Positions 26,713 to 46,046 of a stretch of DNA of 64,000 nucleotides are shown piece after piece. Made by a program: the position numbers and the translations under genes. Below the pieces are notes generated by a model. The model searched no databases, was not told the DNA's origin, and saw nothing but the letters and a program-made list of their open reading frames with translations. The stretch lies in assembly GCA_037447605.1 (NCBI GenBank), contig CM074823.1, positions 1,302,001 to 1,366,000 of the forward strand, written 5' to 3'. This stretch comes from Zygnema circumcarinatum SAG 698-1b (taxonomy: Eukaryota > Plantae > Zygnematophyceae). The first letter of the stretch is position 1. Each line of letters starts with the position of its first letter.

Positions 26713-29700
26713 ATGCCCGTGATCTCGGTAGCTGAAGAGAACGGTCAAATAAAACCTCTTGACTCGGAGATGGATAAAGAAGGCTGCGGGAGCGAGAGGG
26801 CCTGCCCCTCTGCGGACACATCGAGGAGATGGAACCGTCGGTGCGTATTAGGGCTTTGCGGCGCAATGGCGGCGCTGCAACTTCTTTTCTTCATCGCGGA
26901 ATACTCCATGGAAGAGGGGGAGCTGGGGACGGGAGTCTGGCAGATGCTGGGGGGGGAACGGCGCCTGCTGAGAAAAGTCGATGGGAAGCTCCCCGTCTTC
27001 GCCTTCCTCATCACAGGTGGGTTGAGGAGAGAGGAAGGGAGGGACGGAAGAGAAAGATTATTGATCGAGAAGGGCGATATGTGGTGAAATTGGGGTAATT
27101 AGGGAAATTGCGAGGTTGGGCGGGTGGGGAGAAGCGAACGGGGAGGGAGGGGCAGTGGGAGGGAGGGAGGGGTGAAGGGGAGAGGAGAGGGAGAGAGGGA
27201 TGCCGAAGATTGAGGGAAGGGGGGAAGACGACGATTCGAGCCCCACTAATGGTCCCTCTCTCTTTCCCTCCCTCTCTCCCTCTCCCTCTCCCTCTCCCTC
27301 TCCCTCTTCCTCTCCCTCTCCCTCTCCCTCTTCCTCTCCCTCTCNNNNNNNNNNCAAGAGCTTGAATTTGAGTCGCATGACAAGCTGCTGCTCTCATACA
27401 AGTTTGTGCGGAGCTCCATCTGCAGGCAAATCATGGCGAAGCTTACCGTTCTCGATTCGGCAGTTTCCAGCGGGAGGAAGGAGCTTGTACATGGAAATTA
27501 TAGCCGACCCGTACCCACTAATTTTTATCTTTATAGAGGTAACACTGTCTTACTACAGTTCCTTTCGGCATCAGGTTTATGTTTCAGGGTTCAACTATCA
27601 AGATCGGGAGGGAGGCGGAGGGATGTAGAAGAGGCAGATATTGATGGGTGAAGTGAAGGCGGGCAGGGAGTAGACACACGCGGATGGAAAATGGATTTGG
27701 GGGAGGGAGGGAGGGAGGCTGCTGGAAGGGAAAAGCGGGAAACTGAAGAGAGTCAGATGAAGAGAGACAGTGAGAGGGAGTACGTTCGATATGAAAGTCG
27801 GAGAGGGAGAGAGAGAAAGTCATCGTACNNNNNNNNNNCTCCCTCTCCCTTTCCCTCTCCCTCTCCTTCTCCCTCTCTCTCTCCCTCTCCTTCTCCCTCT
27901 CTCTCCCTCTCTCTCTCCCTCTCTCTCCCTCTCTCTCCCTCTCTCTCCCTCTCTCTTCCTCTCTCTCTCTCTCTCTCTCGCTCTCCCTCGCTCTCTCTCT
28001 CTCCCCCTTGTGCGTGCGCCCGCAGGCAGCGAGGGCGAGGTGGCGGCCCTGCAGCGGGTGCTGTACGCCGTGTACCACCCCCGCAACGAGTACCTCCTCC
28101 ACTTGGACCGCTCCGCCCCCGAAGAGGAGCACGCGGCGCTCGCGCACTTCCTGCGCGCCGAGCGCGCGTTCGCGGAGGCGGGGAACGTGCGCGTCGTGAC
28201 GCGCCCCAACGCGGCGACGGACGCGGGCGCGTCCGCGACCGCCACGTGTCTGCACGGCCTCGCGCTGCTCCTGCGGCAGCGCGCGGACTGGGACTGGTTC
28301 GTCACGCTCAGCGCCGCCGACTACCCGCTCGTCACGCCCGACGGTGCGCGCCGGCACATGCACCGCCATGCAGCATAGCACCGCCTAGGATGGCGGCTCT
28401 ATTATGCTTCTACTAGCACCTCTCTCTGTCTCTCGCGCCGCTCCCTCTCTCGCTCTCCCCCCCTGTCGCACTCTGTCCCTCTCCCTCCGCCTCTCCCTCT
28501 CCTCAGTCCCTCTCTCTTTCTCCCTCTCTATTTCGCATGCCTGAGCTTTCGCATTGCCACATTCCTGTTCGTGCCAACTTGTGATGCAGATTTGTTGCAC
28601 GTCTTTTCCTCTGTCCCACGGCACCTCAACTTCGTGGAACACAGCGTTTATCAAAAGCAGAATCTGTACGCCTCTCTCCCTCTCCCTCAGCTGCATTGTC
28701 AAGCACTCGGTTCACACAGTGGATGTGAGCTGCACTTCTCCGTTGTGAGGTGGAAGTTTCCTAGTGACAACGAACAAGAGCTTGAATTTGAGTCGCATGA
28801 CAAGCTGCTGCTCTCATACAAGTTTGTGCGGAGCTCCATCTGCAGGCAAATCATGGCGAAGCTTACCGTTCTCGATTCGGCAGTTTCCAGCGGGAGGAAG
28901 GAGCTTGTACATGGAAATTATAGCCGACCCGTACCCACTAATTTTTATCTTTATAGAGGTAACACTGTCTTACTACAGTTCCTTTCGGCATCAGGTTTAT
29001 GTTTCAGGGTTCAACTATCAAGATCGGGAGGGAGGCGGAGGGATGTAGAAGAGGCAGATATTGATGGGTGAAGTGAAGGCGGGCAGGGAGTAGACACACG
29101 CGGATGGAAAATGGATTTGGGGGAGGGAGGGAGGGAGGCTGCTGGAAGGGAAAAGCGGGAAACTGAAGAGAGTCAGATGAAGAGAGACAGTGAGAGGGAG
29201 TACGTTCGATATGAAAGTCGGAGAGGGAGAGAGAGAAAGTCATCGTACTGGAGGCCATCATGCAACAGAAGCGAGATGGGAGACGACGAGAGAAAGAGAG
29301 GGAGGAGAGAGAGTGGAGAGAGACAGTGAGAAGGAGAGGGGGGGGAGGGAAATGTGGCGCATGGAAGGGTACTGCGGTAAGTGAGATTCAGGGTGCGTGA
29401 GACAACAAACCATCATATATTTTCTTGCTAGACACCGCCGTGGCGAAACCTTGATTTTTTTGTTCGTGACACATGTCACGCAGGTTCGGCGTGGGTGATT
29501 CTGACCCGCGCGTTTTCGGAGTACATGATTTTCGGATACGACAACTTGCCGCGCACGCTGCTGCTGTACCACGCGAACTCGGCGAACGCGCCGGAGCACT
29601 ACGTCCCGACGCTCGCCTGCAACGCGCGGGACTTCAACGCCTCCGTGGTCAACACCGACCTGCGCTACAACCACAACAACAACCGACTTAGGGCACACGC

Positions 29701-34159: not shown

Positions 34160-36458
34160 ATGGCGCACCCCATTCCTCTCCTCCTCCTCTCCCTCTCCTT
34201 CTCCCTCTCCCTACCTCCTCTTCTCCTCTCCTCCCCCCTCCCCCCATCGCATTCAACTCTGCCCTCCCTCCTCAACTCCGCCCTTTCCAGGAAGCTTCTC
34301 TCCTCAAATCCGTACCTTAATACGCGCTACGACGGGGGGCGAATTCTCACTCAAGGCATGGTCGTACACGTGGCATTCATCGGGGACTGGTCCCACAAAT
34401 CAACGGCTAAGAGGACCATAATGCGTTTCTTGGCCTCTCTTGACTCGTCCACAGCAGACCAATCCTTAGACCCCACTGTACGGAAGTGGTGGAACATTAT
34501 TGGCACGTATAAAGACAAGGATGGAAACAGCGCATCGACCATGTTCAGACTTGCAAAGAAGCACATTTTTGGGAATGTGAGCGCGCAACTTGACTACAAC
34601 GACGAGAGAGGGGCACTCGACACTTTGCGCAGTTACTTTCCATTGCCAACCGGTGACAATTATGTGTCTCTCTACCTCACGAGCAATGAAGGTGTCAATG
34701 TGAGGGGCTCTCTCTCTCTCTCTCTCTCTCTCCATCCCATCCTCCAGCAATCTCTCTTCCTCGCCTCCACTCTCTCACTGTCCGTTTCCTTCCTTCCTCG
34801 TCTCTTTTCTCTCCTCGTCCTCGCCACTGACTCCCCTCTCACGCACTCCCCTCGGACCATCCTCCCTCTCCTCTCCTTTCCTTCCTCTCCCACTCTCGCG
34901 CTCTCTCTCTCCCCCTCTCTACCTCTCTCCTCTCTCTCCTCTGTCGTCAAGAATATCACATTCCCTAATCATCCCCTTGCTTCCTCCTCTGACCTTTCCC
35001 TCTCATGCTTGCCTCCACTCCCACACCTTCCCACCCCCCCTCTCTCTCGTCTCCCTCTCTATGCAGGTTGCCAACCCTTGCGTTTGTGGGGAGATTGTGG
35101 GGAAGCAAGGGATATGGGTACACGATACAACCAATTGCTCCAACAAATGTTGGATATCTTCGGAAACTAAAGCACCAAACGACCTCCTTGGCGACATTGT
35201 TGTTTATCAAATGTCAATAGGATTAACATCGTTGGCGGTAAACCCTAATTTCAACTCTTTCGGATGGATTTATTTGTTTCAAACAAATTTTACTTACGTA
35301 TACACTGGGGCCGGATCCGCGTGCTTGAATGAGACCTTTGATCCGAATGGTACATTCTCCTCCCTCTCTCTCACATCCTTAGCCTAACTTCAATCATCAT
35401 CACTAATACCCATTCAATTAAATATTTGTTGAACTTTACTGATTGTAACCTTGATCTACCACTTTGTTGACATGCATTGGCATGCATCCAGTGGCTTGGA
35501 ACGTTTATGGTAATAACGACACAAGATTTTTGGTCGAGCACATAGTCGACCAAGAAGAAAAGAAATGTGCTCTTCAAAGGGATAGCCCTTCGAGTGGAGG
35601 CACTCATCCGAGCTCTTTTTATTCGTCTCCGCCGCCCCTTGCAGCATCACCTCGTACGTGTGCCTCCAAATTCAGCCATTCTCTCTCTCGCGCGCTCTCT
35701 CTCTCCCTCCCCAACTTTCTCTTTCATTCTCTCCCACTCTCGTCCGCTCGCTTTCTCTTTGTTCAAATGCAAAACCCCATGTATTCGTCACTTCGCCCAT
35801 CAAGACCTCCGAGATTGGTTGTTCCTTTCCCTCCCCCCTCCCCCNNNNNNNNNNCTTTGCCTTTGAACATCTCTCTCCTTCCTCTCCTTCTCACCCTCCG
35901 GAGTTCTGCTTGTTCGTTGGAAGTTGCAACCGTTGGTCCCAACCATCTTCTCCTCCCCCACTTCCTTTCCGCCTCTTAACTTTCTAAGGACTCCAAGGCC
36001 AAACACTCCTCCAAATCCTAAAATCCTAAAATCCATAATATTCCTTCCATTTCAACCTCTACTGAGTGACTTTATGGAGGGTTGGTTCAATTGCGCAGAA
36101 GTAAAGTCTGTGTTGACTTCAATCCCAGGATTTATAAGCATCGCAATTTCATGTCTTATATTCATGGTCCTCTGTTGGTACTGCTGTTGCTATAGGAGAC
36201 CGAGCGTGTTTACAAGTATGTACTTTCCTAAACACTGAAAATGGGAGGGAGGGAGAGAGGGAGGGAGGGAGGGAGGGAGGGAGGGAGGGAGGGAGGAAGG
36301 CCCCCAGGGAGAGAGGGAGAGAGGAAAGGAGGGAGGGAGGGAGGGAGGGAGGGGTTCCTCTTTATTCTCTGCTCGCTTGCAAGTCCTTATTGAGTTCGTT
36401 TGTTGTTCCAGGAATGAAAACAGCCGTGCATCCGGAGAACACGGACGACGTGACGTGA
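34160..36458 (+). CDS. EXORDIUM/PHI-1-like (Phi_1) protein with signal peptide, C-terminal TM and short tail, ~362 aa
   Basis: Exons 34160-34699, 35067-35349, 35492-35593 (or 35599 with a GC donor), 36099-36215, 36412-36458; motifs YDGGRILT, FLASLDS..PTVRKWW, VSLYLTS, CVCG, APND, LAVNP, WNVYGNNDTRFLV; TM IPGFISIAISCLIFMVLCWYCCCYRR. Confidence 0.75.
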
Positions 36459-36728
36459 CGACAAGTGTGGTCCTTCGCAGTAATACGTAGCCTTATTGTT
36501 ACTTATTTTTATGACCTAAATTTATTCCAATGAAGGTGAAATGTAAATATCAGTGGAAACTGACTGCAGTCCGGAGGACGACCGAAGCTGAGAATGCAGC
36601 GAATAAGACCGGACGTTCTTTAAACCCTATTTGCGATCCATATTTGATAAGCATCCACTTAAATAAACTTTTTTGAAGTTCGATGGAATTGCGAACAGCG
36701 CGTGGGCTCTGGCAGGCACAGAACTTAG

Positions 36729-37373
36729 TCATGGCATGGCATGGGCATGGCATGGACATGGCATGGCATGGACATGGCATGGGCATGGTATGGCATGGGC
36801 ATGGCATGGACATGGCATGGCATGGACATGGCATGGGCATGGTATGGCATGGGCATGGCATGGACATGGCATGGCATGGACATGGCATGGCATGGACATG
36901 GCATGGGCATGGTATGGCATGGGCATGGCATGGACATGGCATGGCATGGACATGGCATGGCATGGACATGGCATGGACATGGCATGGCATGGACATGGCA
37001 TGGACATGGCATGGCATGGCATGGCATGGCATGGGCATGGTATGGCATGGGCATGGCATGGACATGGCATGGCATGGACATGGCATGGGCATGGTATGGC
37101 ATGGGCATGGCATGGACATGGCATGGCATGGACATGGCATGGACATGGCATGGGCATGGTATGGCATGGGCGTGGCATGGCATGGACATGGCATGGACAT
37201 GGCATGGACATGGCATGGCATCGACATGGCATGGGCATGGCATGGGCATGGCATGGACATGGCATGGCATGGACATGGCATGGCATGGACATGGCATGGA
37301 CATGGCATGGACATGGCATGGCATGGCATTGCATGGCATGGCATTGCATGGCATGGCTTGGCATTTCATGGCT
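36729..37373. repeat. (GGCAT)n-based satellite with GGACAT/GGGCAT/GGTAT variants and a ~54-bp higher-order unit
   Basis: Direct reading; GGTAT variants at 36787, 36841, 36911, 37039, 37093 and 37158. Confidence 0.95.
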
Positions 37374-38120
37374 TGGGGTATAACATTGGAGATTGATGGC
37401 ACATCGGAATTTCCAGAATCCGAACTGAACTTATTTCAAATTTATCCTCTTATGACTCCTGTGACGTGACAGAAGCGTGAACTCTGAAAATCCACCGAGT
37501 GGACTCGAGTTCGACTTTCTGTACAGTGTACTCGCGTTATAGTGATACTGTTTATAATGACACAATGGATATACTGAAGAAATGAATCGCATTGAACTCA
37601 CGATGGCGAGGCCATCAAATGTACATGAACAAAAGAAACATGTGGAACCACGAGGGACTGGCCGCAAAGGACCTAAGCACGAAAGATAAAAGCTAAGAGC
37701 GGATATACTGACATTTTTTCCGGGAACGGAATTGCACAACTGCAGATCCTGCGCCAGTAGTGACGCCATTACGGATATAATGACATCTGAAAAGCCCTAA
37801 TTGTTACTATGTATTCAAAAATCTCGATATTATCCACCGACGTATCGGAATATACGTTACAAATATATTACGACAGTATACATTATCGACAAATACCGTC
37901 AGATATCGACTTGACGGTCAAGTTGACACATCAACTTGACCGTACACATGCCCACTAGGGTTCGTACACACCTACCCACGTGACGACTGCCCAAAAAGTA
38001 CAATGTACGGGATCAAGGCTGCACGGATATACCGCAAAACATCTGTAATGACATTATCACTATACACGTGAAGTGACAAACTGTGCATTACGTATATAGT
38101 GACACAGATATGTGGGGAGT

Positions 38121-40845
38121 CTAAGGCACGTCCGGTCTGTTCGCCGCATACTGAGCATTCGTAGCATCGCCTTTCATGAACGTTGACGGATGACCCATCG
38201 CAGTTTCAAGCGCCTCGTTCAATGCGCCTGAAATGAAAAATCATTCCTCAGTCAGATTCTGAAAAGGCACGCGAAACTAAAAGGAAACTAAAAAGAAGAA
38301 CAGTATGCATGGAGATTCAAAGTCCTCCCTCCGAGGGCCTTACTCTCCCTGTCATTTTCAGTCGCTGACCCTCTGTTAGATAACTTTAACTCACCCAATC
38401 ACACCCTCCTCTCCCCCCCTTTCGCCCTCTTCCTCCCATCCCTCCCACCCCTTCCTCTCTCTCTAACCCTGCCCCTCTCTCTTCACCTCCCTCTCCTCGC
38501 CCTCTCTCATTCTCATCGCCTCTTGCCTTCTCGCCTCTCGCCTCGTCCTCTCCTGTCAATGGGACTTTAGAAAAAGTACAGAATTTACGTACGTAAAATT
38601 TTTCTTCGGCGATAAAAAATGCAAAAAATGATGATCGAGACGAGGACGAGGCCGCCCCCAGCCATCGCTACGACAATCACTACAATAGAAATTCCACCTC
38701 CACCTTTGTTTGCACCTGCGCCACTGCCACCACCACTACCACCACCACCACCACCACCACCACCACCACCACCACCACCACCACCACCACCACCACCACC
38801 ACCACCACCTGCGCAATAGCAGGAGGCCAAGCATACGAACCATTAGCAGAATTCCGAATTTGGGTGTGTTTCAGAGAAGGAAAAAAGGGGCTTCTGGAAG
38901 GTTCTGGAAATGCGTAGGATTCGTGTTCTTTTATTCGTAAGGAAATGACAGGTGGCTATAAAAGCTGCAGCCAAAGAGCTGAAGATTGAAATCCCAAGGA
39001 AGGACTCGTGGTGGATGAAGGCCTCTCTCTCTCCCCTCTCTCTCTCTCTCCCCCCTCCTCCCTCTCTCCCTCTTTATCTCTCTTTCTCTCTCACACTCTC
39101 TCCTCTGTCTGTCCCTCTCGTCCTCTTTTCTTTGTCTCTCTCTTTCTCGCTCTTTCTGTCTTGTAATAACTCTCTCTCCCTCTCTTCTCGTTCCTTTCTC
39201 TTTTGTTCCATTCCCCCTCTCTCCCCCCGCTAGCGAGAGAAGGGGAGAGATAGAGAGAGGCGGACGGGGAGAGAGCGGAAACAACGAGAGAGAGAGAAGA
39301 GATACAATGGAGAGGAGAGTGAGGTGAGTAAGGGGAAGTAGTCAAGGAAAGAGAGGTAGATGAATAGACAAGGAAAAGGGAAAATCTTCGAAGGCGTCAC
39401 TGGATCAAGGAAGAATTTGACATTCAAATTAAACCCCGCAAATATACCTCACTTTGCTATCAAGGAAACAGAAAAATTTATGGGGCATGTGAAGAGAAAA
39501 ATATCATACCTTCCCTTTGAATGGAGCATGCTTTCGTTTCCATGTCGACTAAGGGCATCAAACGGAATTTCTGGCCATCATTTCCGTAAACGTCGTGGGA
39601 AACTGCATGCGCGGCAATGACGAAAATCTTGAAAGAAGTCGATCAGAGCTTCTGGCAAAGGAAGTAAAAATGTAGTGACTGACCGAGATCAATGAAGATT
39701 GTTCAAAAAAAAAAAAAAAAAAAATAGAAGAAAGGGGTTAAAAATAAATTTTAGTACTAAGAGAAATATATGTACCGGGTAAGATGGATGTAACCGAGCA
39801 AGCCTGGCCGATTCCGACGAAAAAACCAGGTATGGAAATAACCCATCCATTCTTATTTTGTCCCTTCCTGTCATATCTGGGGTTCACGGCCACCGACGCT
39901 AAACCCCTCGACATTTGGTAAGTGATGACGTCACCGAGTCGATCATTTGGCTCGCTTAAAGAAGTTGGCCCACAATCATCGGCGCAATATGACGTGTCAT
40001 GAATCCAGATCGCTGCCCTTCCAGTAATTTCTCCGCACACGCATGGGTTTGAGACCTGAACAGAGCAGAGGAGTCGGAAAGGGGGTGGAAGGGGACAAAT
40101 ACGGAAAGTGAAAGTCAGAAAAGCCTAATGTACTGAAAACCGGGGAGAGTATAGGAGGCGATTCTCAGATGTACGCAAAGAGATCGATCAATTTGGCGTA
40201 TTGTGGTACAAGAAGTATACAAGATAGCAATTACACTCAAGGTATAAATAAAGGGAGTAAAGTAAAGGCTTGCTTCTGGAAACATCGGTATTGAAAATCT
40301 TAGAAATCTTAGAAATCTGAGGGAATGTAGGGAGAGAAGAATGTTCTCACATTGACTTCCTTATTGCTCGTTAGGAACACAGTCACATCGTTATCGCCCT
40401 CCGGCACTGAGTGTAAACGACGCAACGCTTCAATGTAAACTGAGCCAACACTGAGGCTAACATTATAGTTTAGTCCTATGACGCTCGGTATGTCATATGC
40501 GTATGTTTGCCCAAATGTGACATTGGTAGACGCTCTAGTTCCATTCTTGTCTTTGTACGTGCCAATAATGTTCCACCACTTCCGTACAGTGGGGTCTAAG
40601 GATTGGTTTGCCTTGTCTGAGTCAAGAGAAGTCAAGAAAGCCACGACTGTCTCCTGAGCCGTTGATTTGTTTGACCAGTCTCCGATGAACGCCACGTGTA
40701 CGTTCATTCCCTTCGTAAGTATTTCTCCCCCCTCGTAACTTAGATAGCTGTACGGGTCGCTGGAGAGAAGCTGGGCTGAAAGAAGGAGAGGAGAGAGGGA
40801 GAGAGAGAGGAGGAGGAGGGGGACGAATGGGAGGCGGACAGCCAT
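38121..40845 (-). CDS. EXORDIUM/PHI-1-like protein with poly-Gly linker, TM and cytoplasmic tail, ~396 aa
   Basis: Exons 40845-40351, 40055-39776, 39602-39510, 38808-38593, 38227-38121 (1191 nt); intron phases match the 34160 paralogue; (GGT)n encodes the linker; TM ISIVVIVVAMAGGGLVLVSIIIFCIFY followed by RRRKIL. Confidence 0.8.
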
Positions 40846-41409
40846 GACTGGAGAGAGAATCGTGGGGAGGGGAGAGGGAAGGAGAGAGAGGCGAGGGGAG
40901 TTGCCAAGAGAGGAAAAGGGAAAACTGAAGAAAGAGCAAAAAAACACAGATAATGGGATGAGGTTAGGAGAGGAACAATGGGAGAAAAATAGAGACCAAG
41001 AGGGGGAGGGCGGGCGGTAGAGGAGACGAGAGAAAGGGGGTCACAGAAGAAAGGGGAGGATGTGAGGTGGAGGAGGGAGAGAGCAATAAGGGAGAGGGAG
41101 AGAGCAAAGGGAGTGAGGGAGAGGTCAAGAGAGAGAGCAGAGAGAGAGGCAGCACAAAACGGGAGAGGGAGGGAGGCCCCGCGTGGAGCGAAGTGGAGCG
41201 GCGGCGCGCTTTTAAATACGAGCTTCGCCACGAAGCAGATCACTTTGTCTTTGTTTTTTTAATTTAAATTTTCCTTTTGACCCGATTGAAGCTTCCGAAG
41301 GACGCCAGGGTTTCGTACAGTGATCCTTACAATCCGTACAGATGCCTTTGGCCGAAACTATTGCCGTATTGGAAAAGTAGCCCACAGTTGTGAATATTCC
41401 TCCTCATTA

Positions 41410-42211: not shown

Positions 42212-42528
42212 TAAGCCCGTAACGACTAGTGCAGCTAGTACGAATAGTACGAATAGTACGTCTAGTACGGCTAGTATGACTAATACAGTACGGCTAGTAT
42301 GGATAGTACGTTTGTACGGCTAACGCAGAGTTACCGTACACAAGTGGTTTCGGCAAAATCAGGGCGAATTTCTCGACGACGCACTGAAATAAGGTGGAAA
42401 ATATGAGCCTTACTGTACAAGCTTCCTCCTGCGGCTTCCTGCTCGCACTCAAAGGCCGCTCATCGCTTTGCGAGCGTTCGCACTGTTGACTTCTGAAATT
42501 ACTCCGTCGATCCTCTCACTTTTCGCCT

Positions 42529-43876
<1,348 letters not shown>

Positions 43877-46046
43877 CTGCCCTCCCACACCCCCTTCCTC
43901 ACACCAACCCCCCTCTCTCGTCCCCTCTCCTTTCCTCTCTCCTCGTCTGCCACCCGTTCTCCCCTCCTTTTCTGCCTATTTCCCTCCCCTTGTGCACCCC
44001 CAGCCACATCCACCCATTCCTTACTTACATTCCTCTCAGCTCACCCTTAATCTCTCTATTTCTTATACACTCCTCTCTCTCCCTCCTCCCTCTCTCCCTC
44101 TCTCTCTCTCCCGCCTCCCCTCTCCCCCTCCATCCTCAGCATGTCTGATTATCCTTATTCATTCTCCATAGAGCTGACGGAGCTGACTGTTGACAATTTG
44201 AGCCTGGTCCCTCCCACTACTCTCACTCTCTGACATGCTTGCAATGTCTGAATCAATACAACCCTCAAGTGCACACACTGAAAAGCAAATGATCCAATCA
44301 AGCAAACACCGAAAGAATAAGTAAGAAAGCTCCTGGCCTCGAAACTCCATAATAAAATTGAAGAGAAACAGACATTTATGTCAAGCCTTAGAGCTTCCTC
44401 TATGCTTCTGACTAACTCCCCTGCTTTGCTGCTCCATGCAGCCAAGCAACTACACTCGGCAACACGAGCAACTGCGGCTCCAATTGAGTTGAATTAGCAG
44501 TAATTAACTCCTAATCAACTCCTCTTCGATGCGCGCTGCCACTACTCCACGTTCTCCCTGCACGCCAGCGCGCACACCATAACTGCACGCACAGCAGCCT
44601 CATGTTATCACATTAATGCCCACCATCTCAGAGCTCGCTGGCACCGCTGGAACTCACCCTCATGGTCGCCATCACCAGAGGACAAGAAGGCCCCGTCATG
44701 CCTTCTCCCACAGGCGCACCGACCTCTCGAAGCTTGGCATCTCACGCGCACGCTCTCCAGCGCCTGTGTTAGTCATCCGTACATCCCATGCGTCTGTACG
44801 TGACGGGCTGCGTTTGACAGATTTGCGTCAGTTCAGTTGTACTTGGCGTGTGCTCTTCCATGTCACGGATCTCAGCGGGAATCACAGCTGCAGGGCGATG
44901 AAGAAGGCGCATGCGTCGCAGCCGGGGACGGCACACCACGGCGCGGCGCACTCGGAGACCCCGCCTGAGCCGCCGTATCGTCGTTGCGCCTGTCCAGAAA
45001 GCTCACGTAGTCAGTCAGGCCTCTCCCGAGATCCGGCGGTCGCAACGAAGGTACCGCTGCTAAGACTAAATCTATTGTCGATGTTCAACTGAGTCGGATG
45101 CCAATGATGCTTCTTTGTCTTTTAGTGCTGGGCTTAGTATTTGTATTTGGTATGTATAGTTTGTTGTCTTGTTCTTCTTTCTCTTTTTCCTCCTCTTCAG
45201 TTACAACAGGCAGATCTAGTGAGAGAGAGAGAGAAAATTCCATGCCATAGATGAAAGAAAGAGGGAGGGCTGTCTTGCTGATAGCATTTTAGACATTGCC
45301 ATTCCAAGCCCCCAACCAAGCAAAAGTTTCAATGAGAAGACAATTTCATTGTAATGACATTGCCGGCCAGGGCCGCTGGCTCAATGGACTGCAGAACACC
45401 ACCTTTATCTAAGTTGTGTCCTGTTTTCCCTCTATGTCACTATGCCAAGCCCCTATCTGCTCTATCCTGCCTAAGTCCTCGATGACCAATGATCACTAGA
45501 AGCCTAGCTAGACTTTAGAGAGGATAGGGGAGGACGTGCGAGGGAAGGGCTCTTTGCGTGTCGAGTCCGGCCGCCGGCGGGAACATCTTCAGGATCCCTA
45601 CGTCTTCCGCTGCGCGTACCTCTGAATCCCCCGGATCCTGGCTCCATGCTGCAGGCAGACCCACAGCACCACCCCAACCCCACGTCAGTTTCAGCACGGA
45701 CGCTCGGGTTGCCGTACAGCATCTGCGACTAGCTCAGCAATCTCCTTTTAACCCCACTTATCTTGTGCTACAGTCTCGTAAGCTCCGGAAATTTCGTACG
45801 GTCGTCCACTAAAGCAATAAGCAATACAAAGCTGACACGCAGCCTATCGCTGCGCGCCACGTGTCCAAACTAATCAATCTAAGTGAGCTCCTGTGATAGC
45901 ACGGCTGTCGCCGCCCTCCCACGCTGTGCTCTCGGACTTCTAGTGTTCCCACCAAGAACAGCGCCCTAGCGCCTTGTTCAGACTGTGACCAAATCTCCTA
46001 AGGACCGCCGACAAAAGGCTAAGGACCGTACAGCGTACAATTCTAG

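Follow-up and report, generated by a model that had tools for sequence, protein, structure and literature searches.

In Arabidopsis, EXORDIUM proteins act as promoters of cell expansion and couple growth to extracellular carbon status (PMC2661892, PMC3691544). Arabidopsis EXORDIUM (EXO) itself is apoplastic, with neither a membrane anchor nor a glycosylphosphatidylinositol (GPI) anchor, and the family is described as cell-wall-associated (PMC2661892), in agreement with a preliminary description of the locus treated here, in which the EXO/PHI-1 proteins of land plants were taken to be secreted, apoplastic proteins. One survey of the family reported no algal homologues (PMC8481617), and work on zygnematophytes lists an EXL among the predicted wall proteins (PMC12820192). 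Here we describe two neighboring genes, A and B, found in a stretch of 64,000 nucleotides of the alga Zygnema circumcarinatum SAG 698-1b (contig CM074823.1, positions 1,302,001 to 1,366,000, forward strand; hereafter, the window). Both quite probably encode membrane-anchored EXORDIUM/PHI-1 proteins, and for gene B taken singly our confidence is higher. In each gene the join between exons 3 and 4 is inferred from the evidence set out below, as is the membrane topology.

Plant receptor-like proteins combine a signal peptide, a ligand-binding ectodomain, a single transmembrane (TM) helix, and a short cytosolic tail; they are devoid of a kinase and pair with receptor kinases. With an ectodomain, one predicted TM helix, and a short kinase-free cytosolic tail, A and B would fit this layout if exon 3 joins exon 4 as modeled. 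The likeness lies in the overall layout, and relatives that bear a kinase behind the same ectodomain exist. The ectodomain is Phi_1 in A and B, in contrast to the leucine-rich repeat, LysM, or malectin ectodomains of plant receptor-like proteins. With the Arabidopsis EXORDIUM and EXL proteins and tobacco PHI-1, A and B share the same Pfam domain, an N-terminal secretion signal (putative in A and B), and the cysteine pattern, together with the motifs YxGG, WYG.W, WW, LTS.DV, FC..CG, the NP helix, and N.YG...FL....C. While EXO is soluble and apoplastic, two further exons in A and B supply a hinge, a TM helix, and a tail; the products are thus predicted, from the TM exon, the basic stop-transfer motif, and the tail, not to be soluble in the apoplast. 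The features of the two genes, in positions of the window, are as follows.

Gene A, exon 1: 34160-34699, forward strand; start codon, signal-peptide-like N-terminus rich in L, S, and P, first half of Phi_1; ends in phase 0, then GTGAGG.
Gene A, exon 2: 35067-35349, forward strand; middle of Phi_1, with PCVCGE, NCSNKC, and the PNDLLGD...NP helix motif; ends in phase 1.
Gene A, exon 3: 35492-35593, forward strand; C-terminal end of Phi_1 (NVYGNN..FLV....C); phase 1.
Gene A, assembly gap of 10 N: 35845-35854, no strand; within intron 3, in a polypyrimidine low-complexity tract.
Gene A, exon 4: 36099-36215, forward strand; 117 nt, phase 1-1, predicted TM helix IPGFISIAISCLIFMVLCWYCCC, cysteine cluster, YRR stop-transfer motif.
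Gene A, exon 5: 36412-36458, forward strand; tail of 15 residues, R followed by MKTAVHPENTDDVT, and a TGA stop.
Gene B, exon 1: 40845-40351, reverse strand; start codon, signal-peptide-like N-terminus, first half of Phi_1; phase 0.
Gene B, exon 2: 40055-39776, reverse strand; middle of Phi_1; ends in phase 1.
Gene B, exon 3: 39602-39510, reverse strand; C-terminal end of Phi_1; modeled donor G|GTATGA at 39509, phase 1.
Gene B, exon 4: 38808-38593, reverse strand; 216 nt, phase 1-1, (GGT)n poly-Gly hinge, predicted TM helix ISIVVIVVAMAGGGLVLVSIIIFCIF, YRRRK.
Gene B, exon 5: 38227-38121, reverse strand; tail of 35 residues, R followed by ALNEALETAMGHPSTFMKGDATNAQYAANRPDVP, and a TAG stop; 3' untranslated region to at least 37981.

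Genes A (forward strand, 34160-36458) and B (reverse strand, 40845-38121) are convergent paralogues of five exons each. The intron phases that they had been said to share were confirmed as 0,1,1,1 in both, with GT..AG at every border; the introns are of the typical eukaryotic kind and many are CT-rich. The coding totals, 1089 nt for A and 1191 nt for B, are each divisible by three. Identity between the two genes falls from 60% in exon 1 to 49% in exon 2 and 40% in exon 3; a second comparison put exon 2 at 46%. No third copy was found within the 64-kb window.

The assignment to the family was verified with the Pfam profile of Phi_1 (PF04674), whose gathering cut-off is 25 bits. Exon 1 alone scored 44.9 bits in A and 49.6 bits in B over profile positions 1-82 (2-82 in A), which bears out the Phi_1-like domain first proposed for these genes. 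Exon 3 of A matches profile positions 249-274, close to the last of the 276 (E 0.0099), and exon 3 of B aligns to residues 298-330 of a related protein, P0008, which is described below. Exon 2 by itself had no match in Pfam; it carries the cysteine pairs of the Phi_1 family and the "...NP" helix motif, and in tblastn it aligns to the middle exon of two relatives, L002 and L003. Because the profile is matched from its first positions on exon 1 to nearly its last on exon 3 of A, with exon 2 aligning to the middle exon of the relatives, the predicted domain, pieced together exon by exon rather than from a joined protein, is complete, ends exactly with exon 3, and is very divergent. Over exon 1, A and B are only about 30-35% identical to any relative in the databases. 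An exhaustive profile search with exon 1 against 1.84 billion representatives gave 55 matches, the best at 68 bits and none below an E-value of 1e-30; no copy of A or B was found among them, only distant relatives. In front of the domain, a hydrophobic run follows Met-Ala (about 1.95 on a Kyte-Doolittle scan of 19 residues), and from this run, which is encoded by CT-rich low-complexity DNA, an N-terminal signal peptide is putative in both proteins.

The anchor would be encoded by exon 4. Its Kyte-Doolittle maxima over 19 residues are 2.38 in A and 2.86 in B, and after the hydrophobic stretch come YRR and YRRRK, respectively, so that the separate TM exon with a basic stop-transfer motif, followed by a short tail exon, was found where it had been described. 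Segments this hydrophobic number only 26 in the six frames of the whole window, and their occurrence in both genes on the right strand, in the right frame, and a few hundred bases past exon 3 is therefore well beyond chance. Exon 4 of A translates as VKSVLTSIPGFISIAISCLIFMVLCWYCCCYRRPSVFT, and that of B as 23 Gly followed by SGGGSGAGANKGGGG and then ISIVVIVVAMAGGGLVLVSIIIFCIFYRRRKIL. The long poly-Gly hinge reported for one of the genes belongs to B, where it is encoded by a (CCA/GGT)x27.7 microsatellite at 38727-38809. The acceptor context ATTGCGCAG is the same in exon 4 of A and of B. Exon 4 of B is open through 71 codons in the phase-compatible frame, and no in-frame ATG lies in exon 4 upstream of the helix, hence the exon has no independent start. 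Beyond the hydrophobic stretch run hydrophilic charged tails of about 23 aa in A and 42 aa in B, and the coding sequences stop 15 and 35 residues into exon 5, before any kinase domain; the TM and tail pieces of A and B matched no Pfam family, Pkinase included. An origin by exon shuffling at phase-1 introns had also been suggested, and with this the symmetric phase 1-1 of exon 4 is at most compatible.

The same layout was found outside the source species. P0008, from a transcript-like contig of 1642 nt (Logan SRR8128906), is a protein of 397 aa in which Phi_1, TM helix, and tail form one uninterrupted open reading frame: Phi_1 spans residues 86-329 (79 bits), a hydrophobic helix 338-369, then come YKRR and a charged hydrophilic tail of 28 residues, and a 3' untranslated stretch of 335 nt follows. 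L002 (Logan SRR9302961) is an AT-rich DNA contig of 3600 nt from another organism, and it shares all four intron positions and phases of A and B. Its exon 1 ends ...SSEVNV|GTAAGT in phase 0, its exon 2 in phase 1, and its exon 3 in a Pro-rich hinge, again in phase 1; a separate TM exon, GSSSSGIIIGVAIGVVLLVIIAISIIVCCCCAK, of phase 1-1 follows, and the tail exon runs off the contig. Both are like A and B in Phi_1, a short hinge, a single TM helix, a basic or Cys-rich juxtamembrane stretch, and a short tail. They differ in coming from other organisms, with 31-41% identity over the aligned part of exon 1, and in their hinges, which are Lys-rich in P0008 and Pro-rich in L002 but poly-Gly in B. The anchored Phi_1 layout, as predicted from these sequences, is thus conserved beyond this species in two other organisms. 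A third relative, P0018 (914 aa, from a EukProt transcriptome), joins Phi_1, a hinge, a TM helix, and a protein kinase. It resembles A and B in Phi_1, the one TM helix, and the basic juxtamembrane stretch; its hinge is of Ala, Thr, and Ser, and it has a full protein kinase domain (139 bits), whereas A and B end after 15-35 domain-free tail residues.

In a tree of the exon 1 region, A and B were joined with support of 100/100, and by path length the clade that contains L002 is the nearest to them. Word-indexed protein searches with the exon 1 region of A in a 336-aa open reading frame, with P0008, and with a subfamily alignment returned nothing beyond the query, and the feature and shape searches of the ESM Atlas returned ordinary EXO-like clusters only. 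No anchored or kinase-fused form of EXORDIUM/PF04674, and no metzincin-like fold for it, is described in the full-text literature searched, which covered few subscription journals. The preliminary description, whose author knew of no such architecture, therefore stands as regards the literature, but the architecture is not confined to this locus, given L002, P0008, and the Phi_1-TM-kinase protein P0018. Two side observations belong to this comparison. One protein of 518 aa from the search of representatives (P0044) carries a CUB domain behind Phi_1, an unusual fusion; Phi_1 scored 86 bits and CUB 23.7 bits, where the cut-off is 21.4. Among the tails of the four anchored forms (36412-36458, forward strand; 38121-38227, reverse strand; L002 from about 3511; P0008 residues 370-397), three carry a His-Pro motif (VHPE, GHPS, GHPG) 6-12 residues past the basic stop-transfer motif, and in P0008 the sequence is SHET; as only four tails were compared, the motif may be fortuitous.

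Transcription was followed on assembled contigs. Six runs, all of one species and drawn from three studies, contained 45-60% of the sequence words of 38100-40900 and had contigs totaling about 40 Mb each, which fits transcriptomes that contain exons and not introns. For four runs from the three studies, contigs were placed on 37400-41000, that is, on gene B only. Introns 1, 2, and 4 of B were confirmed exactly as modeled by spliced contigs in all four runs. The joins lie at 40053/40349 (with the cut at +2, 40055/40351), 39602/39776, and 38226/38592 (with the cut at +1, 38227/38593), and their CT..AC ends on the forward strand make them GT..AG introns on the reverse strand. The 5' untranslated region is covered by contigs to 41000. 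Positions 38592-38710, the 3' part of exon 4, are present in spliced contigs of the four runs, joined to exon 5; because joins with CT..AC ends were obtained in every run, exons 4 and 5 are real, spliced, and expressed on the strand of the gene. Contig depth, which is one figure per contig, was 56-196 on exons 4-5, against 20-120 on exons 1-3. At the donor of exon 3, depth fell in runs X1, X3, and X6 from 15-38 on the exon to 1.4-9.9 just past it, and the body of intron 3 (38852-39214) was at zero depth in both X1 and X3 and at no more than 0.7 in X6. From this drop and the nearly empty intron body, most transcripts appear to leave the genome at or near this donor.

Several points weigh against a membrane-anchored product. 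The join between the Phi_1 exons and the TM exon of B (39510 to 38808), for which junction reads had been proposed as the check, was not seen in the RNA contigs of the four runs, in contrast to introns 1, 2, and 4, because the contigs are cut at 38711-38817, the GGT tract. A contig of 808 nt from run X2, with exons 1-3 spliced, continues 200 nt into intron 3 (to 39310), and low-depth contigs of X3 and X6 also read past the donor of exon 3. Such a read-through transcript of B meets a stop after 10 more codons (...IQREGMIFFSSHAP-stop) and would encode no helix. Thus, on the proposal's own question of whether transcripts end before the TM exon, exons 4 and 5 are spliced on the same strand, but read-through contigs exist. 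Moreover, the signal peptides and TM helices were called from hydrophobicity, the evidence for A and B was drawn exon by exon, the tree of exon 1 does not distinguish between the possible deeper orders, with the anchored forms as one clade or as several, and any function is putative.

The read-through contigs may be explained in two ways. Two isoforms could be produced by design, an anchored one when intron 3 is spliced and a soluble one when it is retained, like the membrane and secreted immunoglobulins. The retained-intron contig of X2 does include spliced exons 1-3, and the protein that it encodes ends cleanly just past the last cysteine of the domain. Low-level intron retention is common in RNA-seq, however, and contig depth is a single figure for each contig; in gene A, read-through past exon 3 meets no stop before the assembly gap, so that the stop of the soluble form is not shared by the paralogue. 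We consider it unlikely that the two forms are so designed.

Alternatively, the products could be secreted only, if the productive mRNAs end in intron 3 or keep it and give soluble EXO-like proteins, with exons 4-5 being a separate transcript or untranslated. Besides the read-through contigs of X2, X3, and X6, the early stop in B, and the unseen join of 39510 to 38808, this would match the apoplastic location of land-plant EXO (PMC2661892). Against it, the TM exon has the same place and phase in L002, and in P0008 the reading frame is continuous; the depth falls steeply past the donor of exon 3, to near zero in the rest of the intron; the phase-compatible frame of exon 4 is open for 71 codons, with no ATG among those that precede the helix; and contigs of similar depth show exons 4-5 spliced on the strand of the gene. 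On balance, secretion as the sole fate is improbable.

Gene A deserves separate consideration, since it could be mis-assembled, the gap joining unrelated pieces, or decaying, with its TM exon unused, in which case B alone would be anchored. The 10-N gap at 35845-35854 falls exactly between the Phi_1 exons and the TM exon, and the RNA support for A, from contigs placed on the gene B stretch, is limited to exon 1: X1 and X6 show a loose contig end at 40539 whose sequence is A 34531-34560 in reverse complement, which means that exon 1 of A is transcribed. The donor of exon 3 is also ambiguous, as 35594 (GTGGAG) competes with the phase-1 donors 35654 (GTACGT) and 35660; an exon extended to 35653 or 35659 would leave the TM frame intact and encode a Ser/Pro-rich hinge, SGGTHPSSFYSSPPPLAASP, as well. 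Because the gap lies within intron 3, the continuity of A is at stake and not its frame. Continuity is indirectly supported by exon order, strand, and phases, which are those of B and of L002, and by the acceptor context ATTGCGCAG, common to A and B. In addition, all the exons of A are open in frame, exon 1 is transcribed, and the gap is in a polypyrimidine tract, a typical site for an assembly to break. We would accordingly give little credit to a broken gene A. A GPI attachment signal in place of the TM helix is highly improbable, since GPI signals end with their hydrophobic stretch whereas here basic residues and hydrophilic tails follow it (about 23 aa in A, 42 aa in B, 28 aa in P0008), even though many plant proteins of the wall interface carry a GPI anchor and the C-terminus is not far from the stretch.

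If the membrane-anchored reading is right, A and B would be a recent convergent duplicate pair whose products, of about 362 aa (A) and 396 aa (B), would be type-I single-pass membrane proteins. From the N-terminus, each would consist of a cleavable signal peptide, a complete, highly divergent Phi_1 domain facing the wall, a flexible hinge (that of B poly-Gly, that of A perhaps Ser/Pro-rich), the TM helix with juxtamembrane Cys and Arg/Lys residues beside it, and a short, domain-free cytosolic tail. The anchor would keep the EXO-type domain at the interface of wall and membrane. The tails are short and dissimilar, so that signaling, if any, would depend on a partner, and the best candidate may be the Phi_1-ectodomain receptor kinase of related algae, much as plant receptor-like proteins pair with receptor kinases. 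A soluble form may also arise from the B transcript that retains intron 3. The role of cell-wall sensor or co-receptor that had been proposed for these proteins is a reasonable but tentative idea; the tails match no Pfam domain.

The fold of the ectodomain was approached through structure models of two relatives, P0008 (mean predicted local distance difference test score, pLDDT, 74.7) and P0037 (residues 75-360; mean pLDDT 88.9, predicted template-modeling score 0.90), rather than of A or B. Both models retrieved metzincin catalytic domains first in structure searches. In VIA-align, ADAM22 and ADAM17 had Z-scores of 7.9-8.1 over 151-176 residues, a borderline range, followed by adamalysin, ADAMTS, archaemetzincin, and ulilysin. 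In Foldseek, the top 50 rows for the P0037 model were all metzincins, also borderline (E 0.0033-0.14, probability up to 0.97, and 0.94 for the row with the best E-value). No solved structure with a sequence relation to Phi_1 was found in sequence searches of the PDB. Many algal Phi_1 proteins carry AHELAE..TNP(D) on a long helix that matches the HExxH helix of metzincins. The matching helix reads IGLTSLAVNPN in A (approximately 35200-35240, forward strand), RGLASVAVNPR in B (approximately 39890-39930, reverse strand), VGLVS in P0008, and VLAGC or LLAGT in EXO of the land-plant type, and the zinc-binding motif HExxHxxGxxH/D is absent from A and B. If metal binding is a property of the HELAE proteins, then A, B, and the other anchored forms, which are without the H-E-x-x-E residues, would be non-catalytic binding modules; judging from these models, the ectodomain of A and B probably serves for binding rather than catalysis. 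The parallel would be ADAM22 and other non-catalytic ADAMs, in that they have a metzincin-fold ectodomain on a type-I anchor, as A and B may have without the putative metal and catalytic residues. ADAM22 has no sequence relation to Phi_1, however, and Phi_1 lacks HExxH (many algal members having HELAE instead) and has no disintegrin or epidermal growth factor modules. A wider proposal, which we hold to be doubtful, is that Phi_1 has a metzincin-like fold whose metal site was lost and which now senses a wall ligand, that in streptophyte algae the anchored (A, B, P0008, L002) and kinase-fused (P0018) forms are the original receptors, and that land-plant EXO proteins are shed or soluble derivatives acting via such a membrane partner.

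Other features of the window were also noted. Downstream of B, at 37521-37770, contigs of all four runs pile up to a depth in the thousands, with many different flanks at 37589-37634; the pattern resembles that of a repeat that is both dispersed and transcribed, and no Rfam family matched it. Between the 3' ends of A and B lies a tandem array of about 650 bp (36730-37376) of CATGG(C/G/A)ATGG units, with periods of 11, 16, and 27 and 85-89% matches. A match to snR86 (Rfam) in intron 3 of B reached 29 bits where the gathering score is 120, and was rejected as a chance match in CT-rich DNA. On the forward strand at 28040-28378, some 6 kb upstream of A, is an exon of a Core-2/I-branching glycosyltransferase gene (GT14 "Branch," PF02485; 77.8 bits), a second cell-wall-related gene in the neighborhood. 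A pure (CT)n microsatellite of about 1.4 kb occupies 42449-44171, and further short N gaps occur in the window, for example near 26.5, 27.3, 27.8, 49.0, and 51.5 kb.

In close algal relatives of land plants, then, the Phi_1 domain would be tied to the membrane, and elsewhere it is fused to a receptor kinase, which together argue that Phi_1 is a sensing or binding module at the interface of wall and membrane. The anchored forms would be simple constructs with which to find the ligand and the partners of Phi_1. A possible metzincin-like fold, with putative metal residues in some algal members that are lost in the anchored and land-plant ones, offers a second testable lead and, if true, the origin of the family in receptors would make it possible to put the way in which EXO acts to a concrete test.

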